A stretch of DNA of 64,000 nt from Trichosphaerium sp. ATCC 40318 (GCA_038496445.1 JALMLS010000420.1:310001-374000), one strand, 5' to 3'; counted from the first letter of the stretch, positions 38,725 through 42,734 are shown. The notes: generated from the letters alone by a model not told the origin. Program-made: numbers and translations.

Positions 38725-39548
38725 ATGTACGCAGTAACAACAACCAGAAGCTGTTTAGTAGCAATAAACCAAAACAAAACTACACGCTATCTAAAGGCTG
38801 TCCCAACGCACAAAAGGCACTATAGTACAGGTACGTTCATTAATAAGCAGTTAAAAGAATTATTCATACCAAGTTTCTAAAAACCGTTTAGAAACGAGCA
38901 AATACGACGAAAAGGAAACAAAAGATATTGTAGACAACGTTCTTCGCGTTTATAACTGTGACATCACTCCTGCTTCTTTCGCAAACTACGCGGATACTAT
39001 GGTGTTCGAAGACCCTGTAATACGCACAGTTGGTACTACTTTCCCATTTAAAACGGTTTAAGCCTAAAACTAAATCCTAGGCGCAAGGAGGTTCCAATCC
39101 GCAATGTTCTTTATGCCACTATGCTTCAAGGAGCCTCAACTTGACGTAACGAACATTGAGAGTAACACAAGCGACAAACGTACGCTACAACCGGAGAAAT
39201 CTGTTTGTTTTTTTCTGACTTTTGTGTGAAGGTACAATCGACGCTCTTCCAACTACAGACCAAGTAGTATCGTTTAACTTGAAGATGTCGTATAGACTAA
39301 GAGGTATTGGCCTCCGTCTATCACTACCAACAAAGATTTTTCTCGAACTCCAAAACGGCCAAATTGTAAGACATCACGATTGTTGGTTTGGTAGAAGAAT
39401 TTTTGGCATGTCAAGATTGAACCCTCTGTTCTATGTACGCAGCTTCGAGGGTTGGTTTTGTGGGTTCCTATTCAGCAGTAAGCGGGATAGAGTGTGGGAA
39501 CAGCAACAACAACAGAGCGGTGTTGACGCTGCTGCACCTTCAGTGTAG
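38725..39548 (+). CDS. NTF2/SnoaL-like fold protein with possible mitochondrial presequence, multi-exon
   Basis: YADTMVFEDPVIRTVG and GQIVRHHDCW are typical SnoaL-like motifs; basic/hydroxyl-rich N-terminus. Confidence 0.7.
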
Positions 39549-39850
39549 TCAATTTGGTTTCTGTTAACAAAGTATTTGTTACGCCAACAGAGAACATTTT
39601 GTTTGGCAAGATGAACTCTAACATTTGTAAATAATTCAATAAAGATAGCAACCAACTTTTATCGGATACACTTGATTCTTATGAGCAGACCTTGTTTTTG
39701 ACTAGACTCAGGCGCTAGATCGTGGTGATCGCTCTTGCTGATCTTTAAACTACTTATGTTGTGCATTAGTAGCTACCAACTTAGGCTCAAATTATCGTAA
39801 TTCAACAAGGCGACTTTGTCTAAGCTTACATTTATTCGATTTTTTTATTA

Positions 39851-42734
39851 TTATTGGTCACTGTCATCCAGTGGACCCATAGCTGTTGTAGCAAGTGCTC
39901 CTTTGCCTGCTTTTTGTGTTTTGGTTTTTGTACGTTTGCGTGGCGTACCACTCTTCTTCTTACGACTCTTTGAGTTATCAGGGGAGCTACCAGGCACAAC
40001 AGTTGTATAAAATCTATACAACATTCTTTCCTCTTTAACCTGAATTTCATCATCTTTTTCGGTAAGTTTATCAACTTTTGCTTTCTGTTTAGTTGTTATA
40101 GACTTGGCTGTTAGTATAATATCAATCTTATCTTTTTCACCAACAACACTATTTTCCAAAAAAAGAGGGTTAGTGGAGGTCAAGAGGATAGATTTTTTAA
40201 ACTCGTTTGGCAAAAAAAAGTTTGACGACTTTTTGAGCGTCAGGACGGACTGCGTCAAGAAATAATAATAAATGCCAATGAGCTCTTGAACGGGTTTCAT
40301 ATTGATCTTTAAAGGATATACGTACAGACCACCTTGACGTCCAAGAATGTCTTCAATTTCTTTATCATCACGTTTGAATTTCCCAATAATAAAAATGTGT
40401 TTGCCGTAAAACACATTCTCACGTAACTTTCTTCCTTTTTCTTTCATGTTGTGTTCAGGGGCATGATCAAACTCATAGTCAAGATGTCTTAGTAGAAATA
40501 TAAGTCTAAAAATAACCAAAAGAACGGAGCACAAGTTTCAACCAAAAAAAAGAAAATTGTAAGAATAAAGTTTGCGTTTTGGCCCATCTTCTGCGAGTGA
40601 TAAATAATATGATTGTACATACACAAAACAACGTTCAACTTCTTCCATGAGTTCTATCTTATCTTGTAGAGTCTGTCCAATATCGTGTGCATCTTTTAAC
40701 TTCATATCTCTGCTTAACACAATATCCATTTCTACTTGGTATTGTGAAGAGATAAAATACGCTCTAATATTCCAATTGTTAAATTCTTTACTAGGTCATT
40801 GTGTTTTTTAAACAAATGGTTCAAAAACGAAGATACACATACTGAACGAAACGAAAAGAAACTCAAAACTTCAATCTTTTTTTTTTTAGCGTTTTGGTCT
40901 TTCGAAGAGACTTAACAAGGGTACATACCTGACTGTGTCTATAGCTTGTATTCTGGGATCATGTTGGGCCGCTATTAGTAAATCGTTATCACAATGCAAG
41001 GAGATAAATAGATAAAAAACTAGCACTTTTTTCAGCAAAATGTTTTTGTACCTATCCACGTGAGTTTAGAAATGAATTCAGGTTTGGCGGCTTTTCCTAC
41101 AAGCCAAGGATACTGTTCTACAACAGAGGGTAAGATGGCTTTAATTTACCATAAATGAGGAGCACCTGAGCCTTCTTCTAGCCATGAATACATGATATAT
41201 AAAGATGTAACAATACCGCCAATAGGATCAACCCATACCTGCCAATAAAACCCAACTAGTAGCGTCGTAAGACCCACCAAATTGGATATAACATCATTTC
41301 TATGATCTATAACAAAAAAAGTGAGAAAAAGCGCTTACCCGACAAAAACCCAAAAAGTACGTTTATCGGGCGGTTTTTTTATTGGCGTACCTTGTGCTAG
41401 CGCTCTAACGCTCTCGCTTTCATTTCTAAGCAAGAAACAAAATACCCACAGTCCTGCCTTTAGTACTATAACAAGAACTAGAGCTGAAATCGTAATTGGA
41501 GTCACCTAAGAAATTGTCAAAAAAAGAAAAAATGACAAACACGTGGAAAAGTTATTTGAAAATAAAAAAAACTGTTTGCTTGCCTTTAATGACTTCTTAA
41601 ACTCCTCCAGGTCTGTGAGTGTGCGTACGCCTTCAACTACAACTTGGAAAGTTGCTGTAAACATACAAGCGGCGAATACAATAATACCAACTGGTTCAAC
41701 ACGACTCTTGCCTAAACACGATAAAAATGAGAACCTTGAGTTAAAAAAACCACAAAAACCGCCACACATACCTGCAGGGTATTTATAAAAATTACTCTTA
41801 GACTTGGTTATATAGTACGTAAGGAATATTGTTAGACCTGATAGGATATCTAGAGCCGAGTCTATGACTATTTGAGGTAAAAAAAGTTAACGTTGTAATA
41901 ATAAAGAGAAGGTTGTCAAGAGTACCTGAAGCCAGAACAGAGATGGATTTAGAAAGAACTAATACGCCAATTTTAACAAAAAACAACAAAATGTTAACAC
42001 AAAACGAAAGCCATACAGCTATCTTAACACGAGTCTCTAAGATGTTATAAGACAGAAGAAAAGATCAAAAAACCAGATTCAAATCACAAATTGTGACGTT
42101 TATGTACGCACTGTGTTTTTCCTCGTCTTGCATGTATTTTGTAAAGTAAGCTGGTTGTGTGGCTTCTTCAAGGTCATCTATGAGTTGCTGCTGTTTTTTG
42201 TAATATTTCTTCACTTTTCCTTTAGTATGCTTTGGTATGTCGATCTTGTGCGTAAAATTAGCCAACAACGGCGGTAAAACATGATTTTAAAAAAAAAGCG
42301 GAAAATTGCCAATCAAACTAACCTTCAAGTCTGGAAATGATGACAAAGGCACTGCCTTTACTCGCGCTGGGCCTGGATCTACTTTCTCCATGTTTAATGT
42401 AAATGGCAAGTTAGAATAGCATTCGTAACACGTCTGGCGTGGTGGTTACGTTCACAATAGAATGTAGAGTGTACCAGAACCTTTTTCTGACAATCTAAAA
42501 GCTTTTGCGAGAAAAAAACGGCCGTTAAGACCAGATTTAGTACGTGTGCTTTACATCGCTTTAATTTGATATTAACATACGCCACCGGATAAACCATAAA
42601 GAATGAACGTATTACCCCTCAATATACTGGTTTTCCAATTCTCCGTGACTCTGTAGCTTATCTTTACTTACTTAAGTACCAGGTAAACTTTATGCGCGAA
42701 GTGTGCAGTACTTACCTGAAATATTTGTAGCCAT
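39851..42734 (-). CDS. Mn-type cation diffusion facilitator (MTP8-11-like) with C-terminal BRCT-like domain, multi-exon
   Basis: DSALD and DHRND metal sites, YPAGKSRVEPVGIIVFA, AHDIGQTLQDKIE...ERCFVHLDYEFDHAPEH. It continues without a stop into VFYGKHIFIIGKF...ILGRQGG. Confidence 0.9.

Follow-up and report, generated by a model that had tools for sequence, protein, structure and literature searches.

A manganese-type cation diffusion facilitator with a BRCT-like C-terminal extension in Trichosphaerium sp.

Cation diffusion facilitators (CDFs) act as homodimers and have cytosolic C-termini, as is the case for YiiP and the CDFs of the ZnT type. BRCT domains are found almost entirely in nuclear proteins of the DNA-damage response, of replication and of the cell cycle. 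Among the CDFs, those that transport manganese are marked by a DxxxD motif in both the second and the fifth transmembrane helix (TM2 and TM5), and the four aspartates of these motifs make up the Mn site (PMC4995437). Here we describe a gene of Trichosphaerium sp. ATCC 40318 in which a CDF core of the manganese type is continued by a BRCT-like extension. The gene lies on the minus strand of a 64-kb window, by which we mean the whole stretch of 64,000 nucleotides that was analysed (GCA_038496445.1 JALMLS010000420.1:310001-374000), and all coordinates given below are positions in this window.

One spliced mRNA for the transporter core and the extension

By reading the strand and checking the splice sites and their phases we could assign 12 exons to the CDF gene, which runs from the ATG at 42391 to the stop codon at 39853-39851. 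Ten of the introns are of the GT-AG type and one is GC-AG (41583-41506). The spliced coding sequence has a length of 1503 nt, that is 500 codons and a single terminal stop, and the protein derived from this exon model is identical to the database protein P0001 (500 aa). The parts of the gene are as follows.

39817..42455, minus strand: whole transcribed unit with 12 exons, a 5′ untranslated region of 64 nt with in-frame stops and a 3′ untranslated region of ~34 nt; defined by the transcript contig L001 and the contigs of the runs X1, X2, X6 and X4
42389..42391, minus strand: start codon, the first ATG; an in-frame TGA and an in-frame TAA lie upstream in the 5′ untranslated region of L001
40623..42391, minus strand: exons 1-10, coding for the N-terminal cytosolic segment, the Cation_efflux domain with six transmembrane helices and the cytosolic ZT_dimer domain, as located by exon-by-exon Pfam matches
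42391-42323, minus strand: exon 1
42244-42112, minus strand: exon 2
42036-41926, minus strand: exon 3
41867-41772, minus strand: exon 4
41711-41584, minus strand: exon 5
41505-41391, minus strand: exon 6
41306-41166, minus strand: exon 7
41117-41052, minus strand: exon 8
40971-40929, minus strand: exon 9
40763-40623, minus strand: exon 10
40487-40326, minus strand: exon 11, with the end of the CDF core, the basic linker and the BRCT-like domain as far as GG-L, which is its first half
40149..40325, minus strand: intron 11, of the GT..AG type, 177 nt long and free of in-frame stops, located within the coding sequence of the BRCT-like domain after helix 1 (..GRQGG) and before strand 2
40148-39851, minus strand: exon 12, with the rest of the BRCT-like domain, the basic tail and TAA
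39851..39853, minus strand: stop codon TAA, with two AATAAA hexamers behind it (39849-39844 and 39837-39832); the contigs end at 39817-39848

The transporter core and the tail are made as one polypeptide from one spliced mRNA. The transcript contig L001 (1599 nt, JGI sample) agrees with each of the 12 exons at an identity of 99-100%, from the 5′ to the 3′ untranslated region, has in-frame stops before the ATG and ends ~34 nt past the stop codon beside the AATAAA hexamers. As L001 alone covers the whole coding region, the fusion is a real mRNA. All eleven introns are absent from the contigs of public runs which belong to four studies (X1, X2, X6 and X4): X6 contributes a single 1599-nt record over 39817-42453, which is the same contig as L001, X1 two records (39840-41277 and 41391-42455), X2 a spliced record over 39848-40765, and X4, an RNA library on record, the joint of exons 10 and 11 together with a part of exon 12. 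The exon 10/11 joint (40623/40487) is crossed by contigs from four runs and the exon 11/12 joint by those of X1, X2 and X6. Such contigs lose rare forms and cannot reveal transcript starts.

The transition from the core to the extension takes place within exon 11, which reads V-HLDYEFDHAPEH-NMKEKGRKLRENVFYGKHIFIIGKFKRDDKEIEDILGRQGG and is free of stops. Positions 40487-40451 encode the final 13 residues of the core (V-HLDYEFDHAPEH), the basic linker contains an internal ATG at 40447-40445, and exon 12 goes on with VVGEKDKIDIILT...IQVKEERML, the basic tail and TAA. As no stop follows PEH and the CDF passes into the tail within a single exon, the tail is encoded by every CDF mRNA that extends to exon 11. 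A minus-strand open reading frame of 227 codons (40534..39851) is open straight through intron 11.

The core itself was searched against profiles exon by exon and then with the natural database records P0001 (protein) and L001 (mRNA). P0001 matches PF01545 Cation_efflux (E 1.5e-30, 106.9 bits with a cut-off of 26.6, residues 75-267), PF16916 ZT_dimer (29.7 bits, cut-off 26.7, residues 277-351) and TIGR01297 (108.5 bits, cut-off 82.35). The DxxxD motifs of the Mn type are present as DSALD at residues 107-111 in TM2 and as DHRND at residues 218-222 in TM5, and both align with proteins that bear the names MTP7, MTP9 and MTP11. These matches and motifs show that P0001 is a CDF of the Mn type (MTP8-11 type), the core of which (residues 1-360) is predicted to be an antiporter that consists of six transmembrane helices and a ferredoxin-like cytosolic dimerisation domain.

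Much of this had been anticipated in a preliminary description of the same DNA, made from the sequence. It had named an Mn-CDF transporter, and the profile scores and both motifs agree with it. It had also stated that the usual MTP end lacks a stop and that the frame runs on into an extension which closes with a basic NLS-like (nuclear localisation signal-like) tail after IQVKEERML; the stop-free translation of exon 11, L001 and P0001 bear out the former and the translation of exon 12 contains the latter. Continuity across 40490-40440, which it had left to RNA data, is now seen in L001, and contigs from four runs join exon 10 to exon 11. Finally, its description of the intron 40149-40325 as 177 nt long, stop-free and a multiple of 3 holds in the sequence, and the removal of this intron is seen in the contigs.

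Some further observations concern the introns of this gene. The lengths of nine of the eleven are divisible by 3 (78, 75, 60, 78, 84, 48, 165, 135 and 177 nt, the exceptions being 58 and 80 nt), with a hand-computed binomial P of ~0.001 against an expectation of one third, which refers to this gene only. In-frame stops are present in seven of the nine divisible introns; introns 4 (41771-41712) and 11 have none. Intron 5 (41506-41583), the GC-AG intron, has the donor gcaagc and the acceptor ttag and is cleanly spliced in the contigs of X1, X2 and X6. In X2 a 119-nt contig (40736-40862) connects exon 10 with unspliced sequence of intron 9 and differs by two substitutions and by a deletion of 8 nt at 40841. 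This contig stems from either pre-mRNA or DNA and shows an indel polymorphism of the intron.

Resemblance of the extension to BRCT domains

The extension after PEH (residue 360) comprises 140 aa (residues 361-500) and can be divided into a basic linker of 11 residues (361-371), a BRCT-like region of ~80 residues (~373-453) and an end of 47 residues (454-500). The latter is rich in Ser, Thr, Pro and Gly, contains 12 Lys/Arg residues (SKSRKKKSGTPRKRTKTKTQK, NLS-like, with the clusters RKKK and PRKRTK) and terminates in the acidic LDDSDQ. In the window the two larger parts occupy the following positions.

39995..40414, minus strand (coding 40414-40326 and 40148-39995): BRCT-like domain, residues ~373-453, recognised with Pfam, with phmmer against the PDB and by its Atlas neighbours
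39854..39994, minus strand: C-terminal tail, residues 454-500, probably disordered, as judged from the translation, the composition and a pLDDT <55 in the AlphaFold2 (AF2) model

Pfam gives BRCT (PF00533) as the top family for the extension, with 20.7 bits and an E-value of 5e-4 on residues 365-460 of P0001, where the profile is covered from position 3 to 59 of 78, and BRCT_2 as the second family. With other query spans PF00533 reaches E 0.087 (exon 11 alone), E 0.0014 (residues 355-500) and 15.8 bits (whole protein). NCBIfam gave no match on the extension. When residues 361-460 were compared by phmmer with all PDB sequences, four matches at E <10 were obtained and all of them are BRCT domains, three from PARP1 and one from XRCC1 (1cdz). 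Although each of these E-values is weak, ranging from 0.022 for the best match (PARP1, 2cok) to 0.46, a list made up of BRCT domains throughout is improbable by chance, because BRCT chains are only a small share of the PDB. The alignment with PARP1 spans strand 1, the GG turn, strands 2-3, helix 2 and strand 4, and the core signature of BRCT domains is present, as HIFIIG, ILGRQGG and IDIILT of P0001 stand opposite KILTLG, MIEKLGG and SLCIST of PARP1. In two language-model feature searches of the Atlas the BRCT clusters were nearest (0.85-0.87), and members of the BRCT clan made up 8 of 10 and 10 of 10 of the family-bearing neighbours, which we use at the level of a lead. Given these results it is likely that the middle of the extension is homologous to BRCT.

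The BRCT domains that bind phosphopeptides, such as those of BRCA1, MDC1 and TopBP1, have Ser/Thr-Gly at the turn between strand 1 and helix 1 together with a Lys in helix 2, and in most cases they occur as a tandem pair. In P0001 strand 1 is followed by the turn IIGKF, compared with TLGKL in PARP1, and the phosphate-binding Ser/Thr position is taken by Ile (Leu in PARP1). The extension thus has Ile-Gly in place of Ser/Thr-Gly, and it contains a single domain. Because a single domain devoid of the Ser/Thr of the pocket would hardly recognise phosphopeptides, phospho-sensing is unlikely. The preliminary description had spoken of a metal transporter with a grafted interaction or phospho-sensing module; the graft stands, since the BRCT-like part is fused to the core in one mRNA and one reading frame, and the phospho-sensing part of the proposal is unlikely in view of the Ile found in the PARP1 alignment. 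BRCT domains of the PARP1 type have been reported to take part in protein-protein contacts (e.g., with XRCC1), in the recognition of poly(ADP-ribose) and in the binding of intact DNA (PMC13507078).

Since the extension has no relatives from which an alignment could be built, AF2 was run in single-sequence mode on residues 355-500 and on residues 366-458. The models have pLDDT values of 58 and 63 and form a ferredoxin-like sandwich, and the five models of each run disagree with each other (mean pLDDT 38-63). Their structural neighbours are only weak and of a generic alpha/beta kind (RRM, PII and UreE types). The BRCT fold has a parallel sheet of four strands with three helices at its flanks, and its strands and helices succeed each other as they do in ferredoxin-like folds. 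Because of this common order and the poor quality of the models, they cannot separate the two folds, and in view of the low confidence we take the outcome of AF2 and Foldseek as uninformative and not as a disproof of BRCT. A duplicated cytosolic domain of the CDF could be ruled out as the source of the extension: hhalign gave a probability of 0.1% against a CDF profile of 31 sequences, and BLASTP gave no alignment to residues 270-360.

Proposed role of the extension and alternative explanations

We give somewhat better than even chances to the explanation that a single mRNA encodes an Mn-CDF core, a BRCT-like cytosolic docking or localisation module and a basic tail. As the C-termini of CDFs face the cytosol, the module would be exposed to the cytosol at the endomembrane in which the transporter resides, whichever this is, and as CDFs are homodimers, two BRCT-like copies would come to lie side by side in the dimer. 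The extension probably serves as a cytosolic module for docking or localisation. Most likely it offers a phosphorylation-independent docking site for a partner protein, or possibly for nucleic acid or poly(ADP-ribose). With the polybasic tail, it would determine where the transporter is located, how it clusters or how it is regulated, and would have no part in the metal transport itself. This architecture probably originated in this lineage, when the ancestral stop a few codons past PEH was lost and a downstream BRCT-coding sequence was captured. A nuclear link appears quite unlikely to us: the basic tail would target the transporter to the inner nuclear membrane, where the PARP1-like BRCT domain would keep it on chromatin and it would pump Mn2+ from the nucleoplasm, or else a BRCT-NLS piece of ~15 kDa would be cut off the membrane and would signal the metal status to the nucleus, in likeness to membrane-tethered transcription regulators.

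Several observations weigh against a BRCT-like docking module. The score for PF00533 is just under the gathering cut-off of 21.3 bits, the last 19 positions of the profile (60-78, corresponding to strand 4 and helix 3) are unmatched, and residues 361-500 do not contain any Trp, which means that the usual Trp of helix 3 is missing from the candidate helix EERMLYRFY. Neither Foldseek (PDB) nor VIA-align wide found a BRCT fold match for the poor AF2 models. Moreover, the extension has no homologue and might be a young neutral addition, and for the same reason conservation cannot back a function of the extension. The BRCT-type domain proposed in the preliminary description is therefore kept with a reservation: BRCT is the best and the only family assignment, whether by Pfam, by the PARP1 and XRCC1 matches in the PDB or by the Atlas, yet the profile search of the spliced C-terminus, which places it first, stays below the cut-off, and the low-confidence models do not add a fold match.

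An alternative is a structured or partly structured, lineage-specific extension with a fold other than BRCT, for example, a ferredoxin-like beta-alpha-beta-beta-alpha-beta domain with a regulatory or metal-binding function beside the ferredoxin-like cytosolic domain of the CDF, the likeness to BRCT being due to chance or composition. The sub-threshold Pfam score and the ferredoxin-like shape of both AF2 models, the best structural neighbours of which include the metal-binding UreE and PII-like sensors, speak for such a fold. We nevertheless hold it to be unlikely, as the models are of low confidence and contradict each other, the order of elements is the one that BRCT also has, three sequence-based methods give BRCT only, and the extension is unlike the CDF profile and unlike the cytosolic domain of P0001 itself. 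Also improbable is the view that the extension is a functionless, recent and neutral read-through, in which the loss of a stop codon joined the CDF to the decaying sequence of a BRCT gene. When the extension was compared exhaustively by phmmer with 1.84 billion representative proteins, only P0001 itself was returned, word-index searches with the unspliced 227-aa reading frame and with the spliced domain gave no matches, and the closest CDF (50% identity) ends 2 residues past the PEH motif. Five nucleotide differences were found in other runs, all of them synonymous and in third positions, in codons 158, 191, 198 and 333 of the CDF part and in codon 401 of the tail. This pattern fits with purifying selection on the gene; for the tail itself it tells little about constraint, as a single change falls there. 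A neutral origin is difficult to reconcile, on the other hand, with a frame of 140 codons that is kept across a correctly phased and efficiently spliced intron, with poly(A) signals directly after the stop codon, with intact core motifs of the domain and with a tail that is unchanged in transcripts labelled as three organisms (A, B and D).

Two further explanations concern the products of the gene. The fusion might be accompanied by a free BRCT-plus-NLS nuclear protein of 139 residues, made from an internal promoter or from Met362 (ATG 40447-40445). This ATG is located two codons past PEH, and its product would join a compact BRCT domain to an NLS-like end and make a plausible small nuclear protein. 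But none of the contigs begins at this ATG and those that cover 40447 all extend upstream into exon 10, bearing in mind that starts cannot be seen in contigs, and the ATG is exonic, with a distance of only 40 nt to the acceptor; we consider this second product very unlikely. Least credible of all is the idea of the preliminary description that a regulated retention of intron 11 adds 59 residues in frame and thereby toggles the domain. No other long intron of the gene is both a multiple of 3 and stop-free. Against its retention, intron 11 is spliced out in L001 and in the contigs of X1, X6 and X2, and no retention is seen in the contigs of the four runs, the depth over 40188-40298 being 0 in all four, although rare forms would be lost in contigs. 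A switch by splicing is without support, since no contig retains the intron. A stop-free frame arises in 3.5% of composition-preserving shuffles of intron 11, which is uncommon and not extraordinary, and divisibility by 3 is shared by most introns of the gene anyway (9/11). The translation of the intron is hydrophobic and of low complexity and matches no family, and Rfam had no match in intron 11 or in the rest of the gene.

Distribution and comparison with described systems

Among the matches listed for the full-length protein are 119 other CDFs, the closest with the 50% identity mentioned above, and none covers >72% of the query; a BRCT domain of Pfam is present in none of these 119 closest CDFs. 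Where the PEH motif could be located in the relatives, the length past it has a median of 5 residues, which makes the 140 aa of P0001 unusual. In the literature searched we found no paper that joins a CDF transporter and a BRCT domain in one protein. The putative combination of CDF and BRCT-like domain is a lineage-specific new domain architecture assembled from known parts. The protist CDF relatives P0006, P0008 and P0012 have C-terminal extensions of 50-145 residues which are rich in K, S, N and E and of low complexity by eye. C-terminal extension thus seems to be repeatedly tolerated in Mn-CDFs, and among those compared a domain-like insert occurs only in P0001.

A second copy of the extension was not found within the window. 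Downstream of the CDF gene an apparently convergent neighbour is present on the plus strand (39222-39556), an open reading frame of 108 aa that ends in a run of Gln, with a gap of <300 nt to the 3′ end of the CDF gene. A contig of X2 (39396-39556) has an extra CAG at 39500, which suggests a polymorphic glutamine repeat.

If the BRCT assignment is true, an integral-membrane metal exporter would be a new context for BRCT domains, and CDFs would have acquired a new kind of C-terminal appendage for regulation or targeting. As an expressed and compact fusion of 500 residues, P0001 would then give a handle on what BRCT does outside DNA repair. The weight of these considerations is limited by the fact that P0001 is an orphan of a single lineage, with a BRCT likeness by sequence and an inferred function.

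A precedent for a CDF with additional non-transporter sequence and nuclear roles is ZnT9, here compared by description. For ZnT9/SLC30A9 (also HUEL or GAC63) homology to the DNA-binding domain of a DNA-repair protein, nuclear localisation and coactivator activity have been reported, and today it is regarded mainly as a mitochondrial zinc transporter (PMC9231024). Unlike P0001, ZnT9 belongs to the Zn-type subgroup of the CDFs and does not have a BRCT domain.

On the side of the extension, the BRCT domains of PARP1 (2cok, 7scy and 2le0) and XRCC1 (1cdz) are the closest PDB sequences, and PARP1 is likewise hydrophobic at the Ser/Thr position. In contrast to these proteins, P0001 has no WGR, PARP or other DNA-repair domain, its BRCT-like domain sits on an integral membrane transporter, and helix 3 is unaligned and devoid of Trp. 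On the side of the core, the closest systems are the Mn-CDFs, that is, groups 8/9 of plants (MTP8-MTP11) and their protist, fungal and invertebrate kin, which have 36-50% identity to P0001. With them P0001 has in common the Cation_efflux and ZT_dimer domains, DSxLD in TM2, DHRND in TM5 and the end FVHLDYE.DH.PEH. Whereas these relatives end soon after PEH, P0001 continues for its 140 extra residues with a domain that looks folded.

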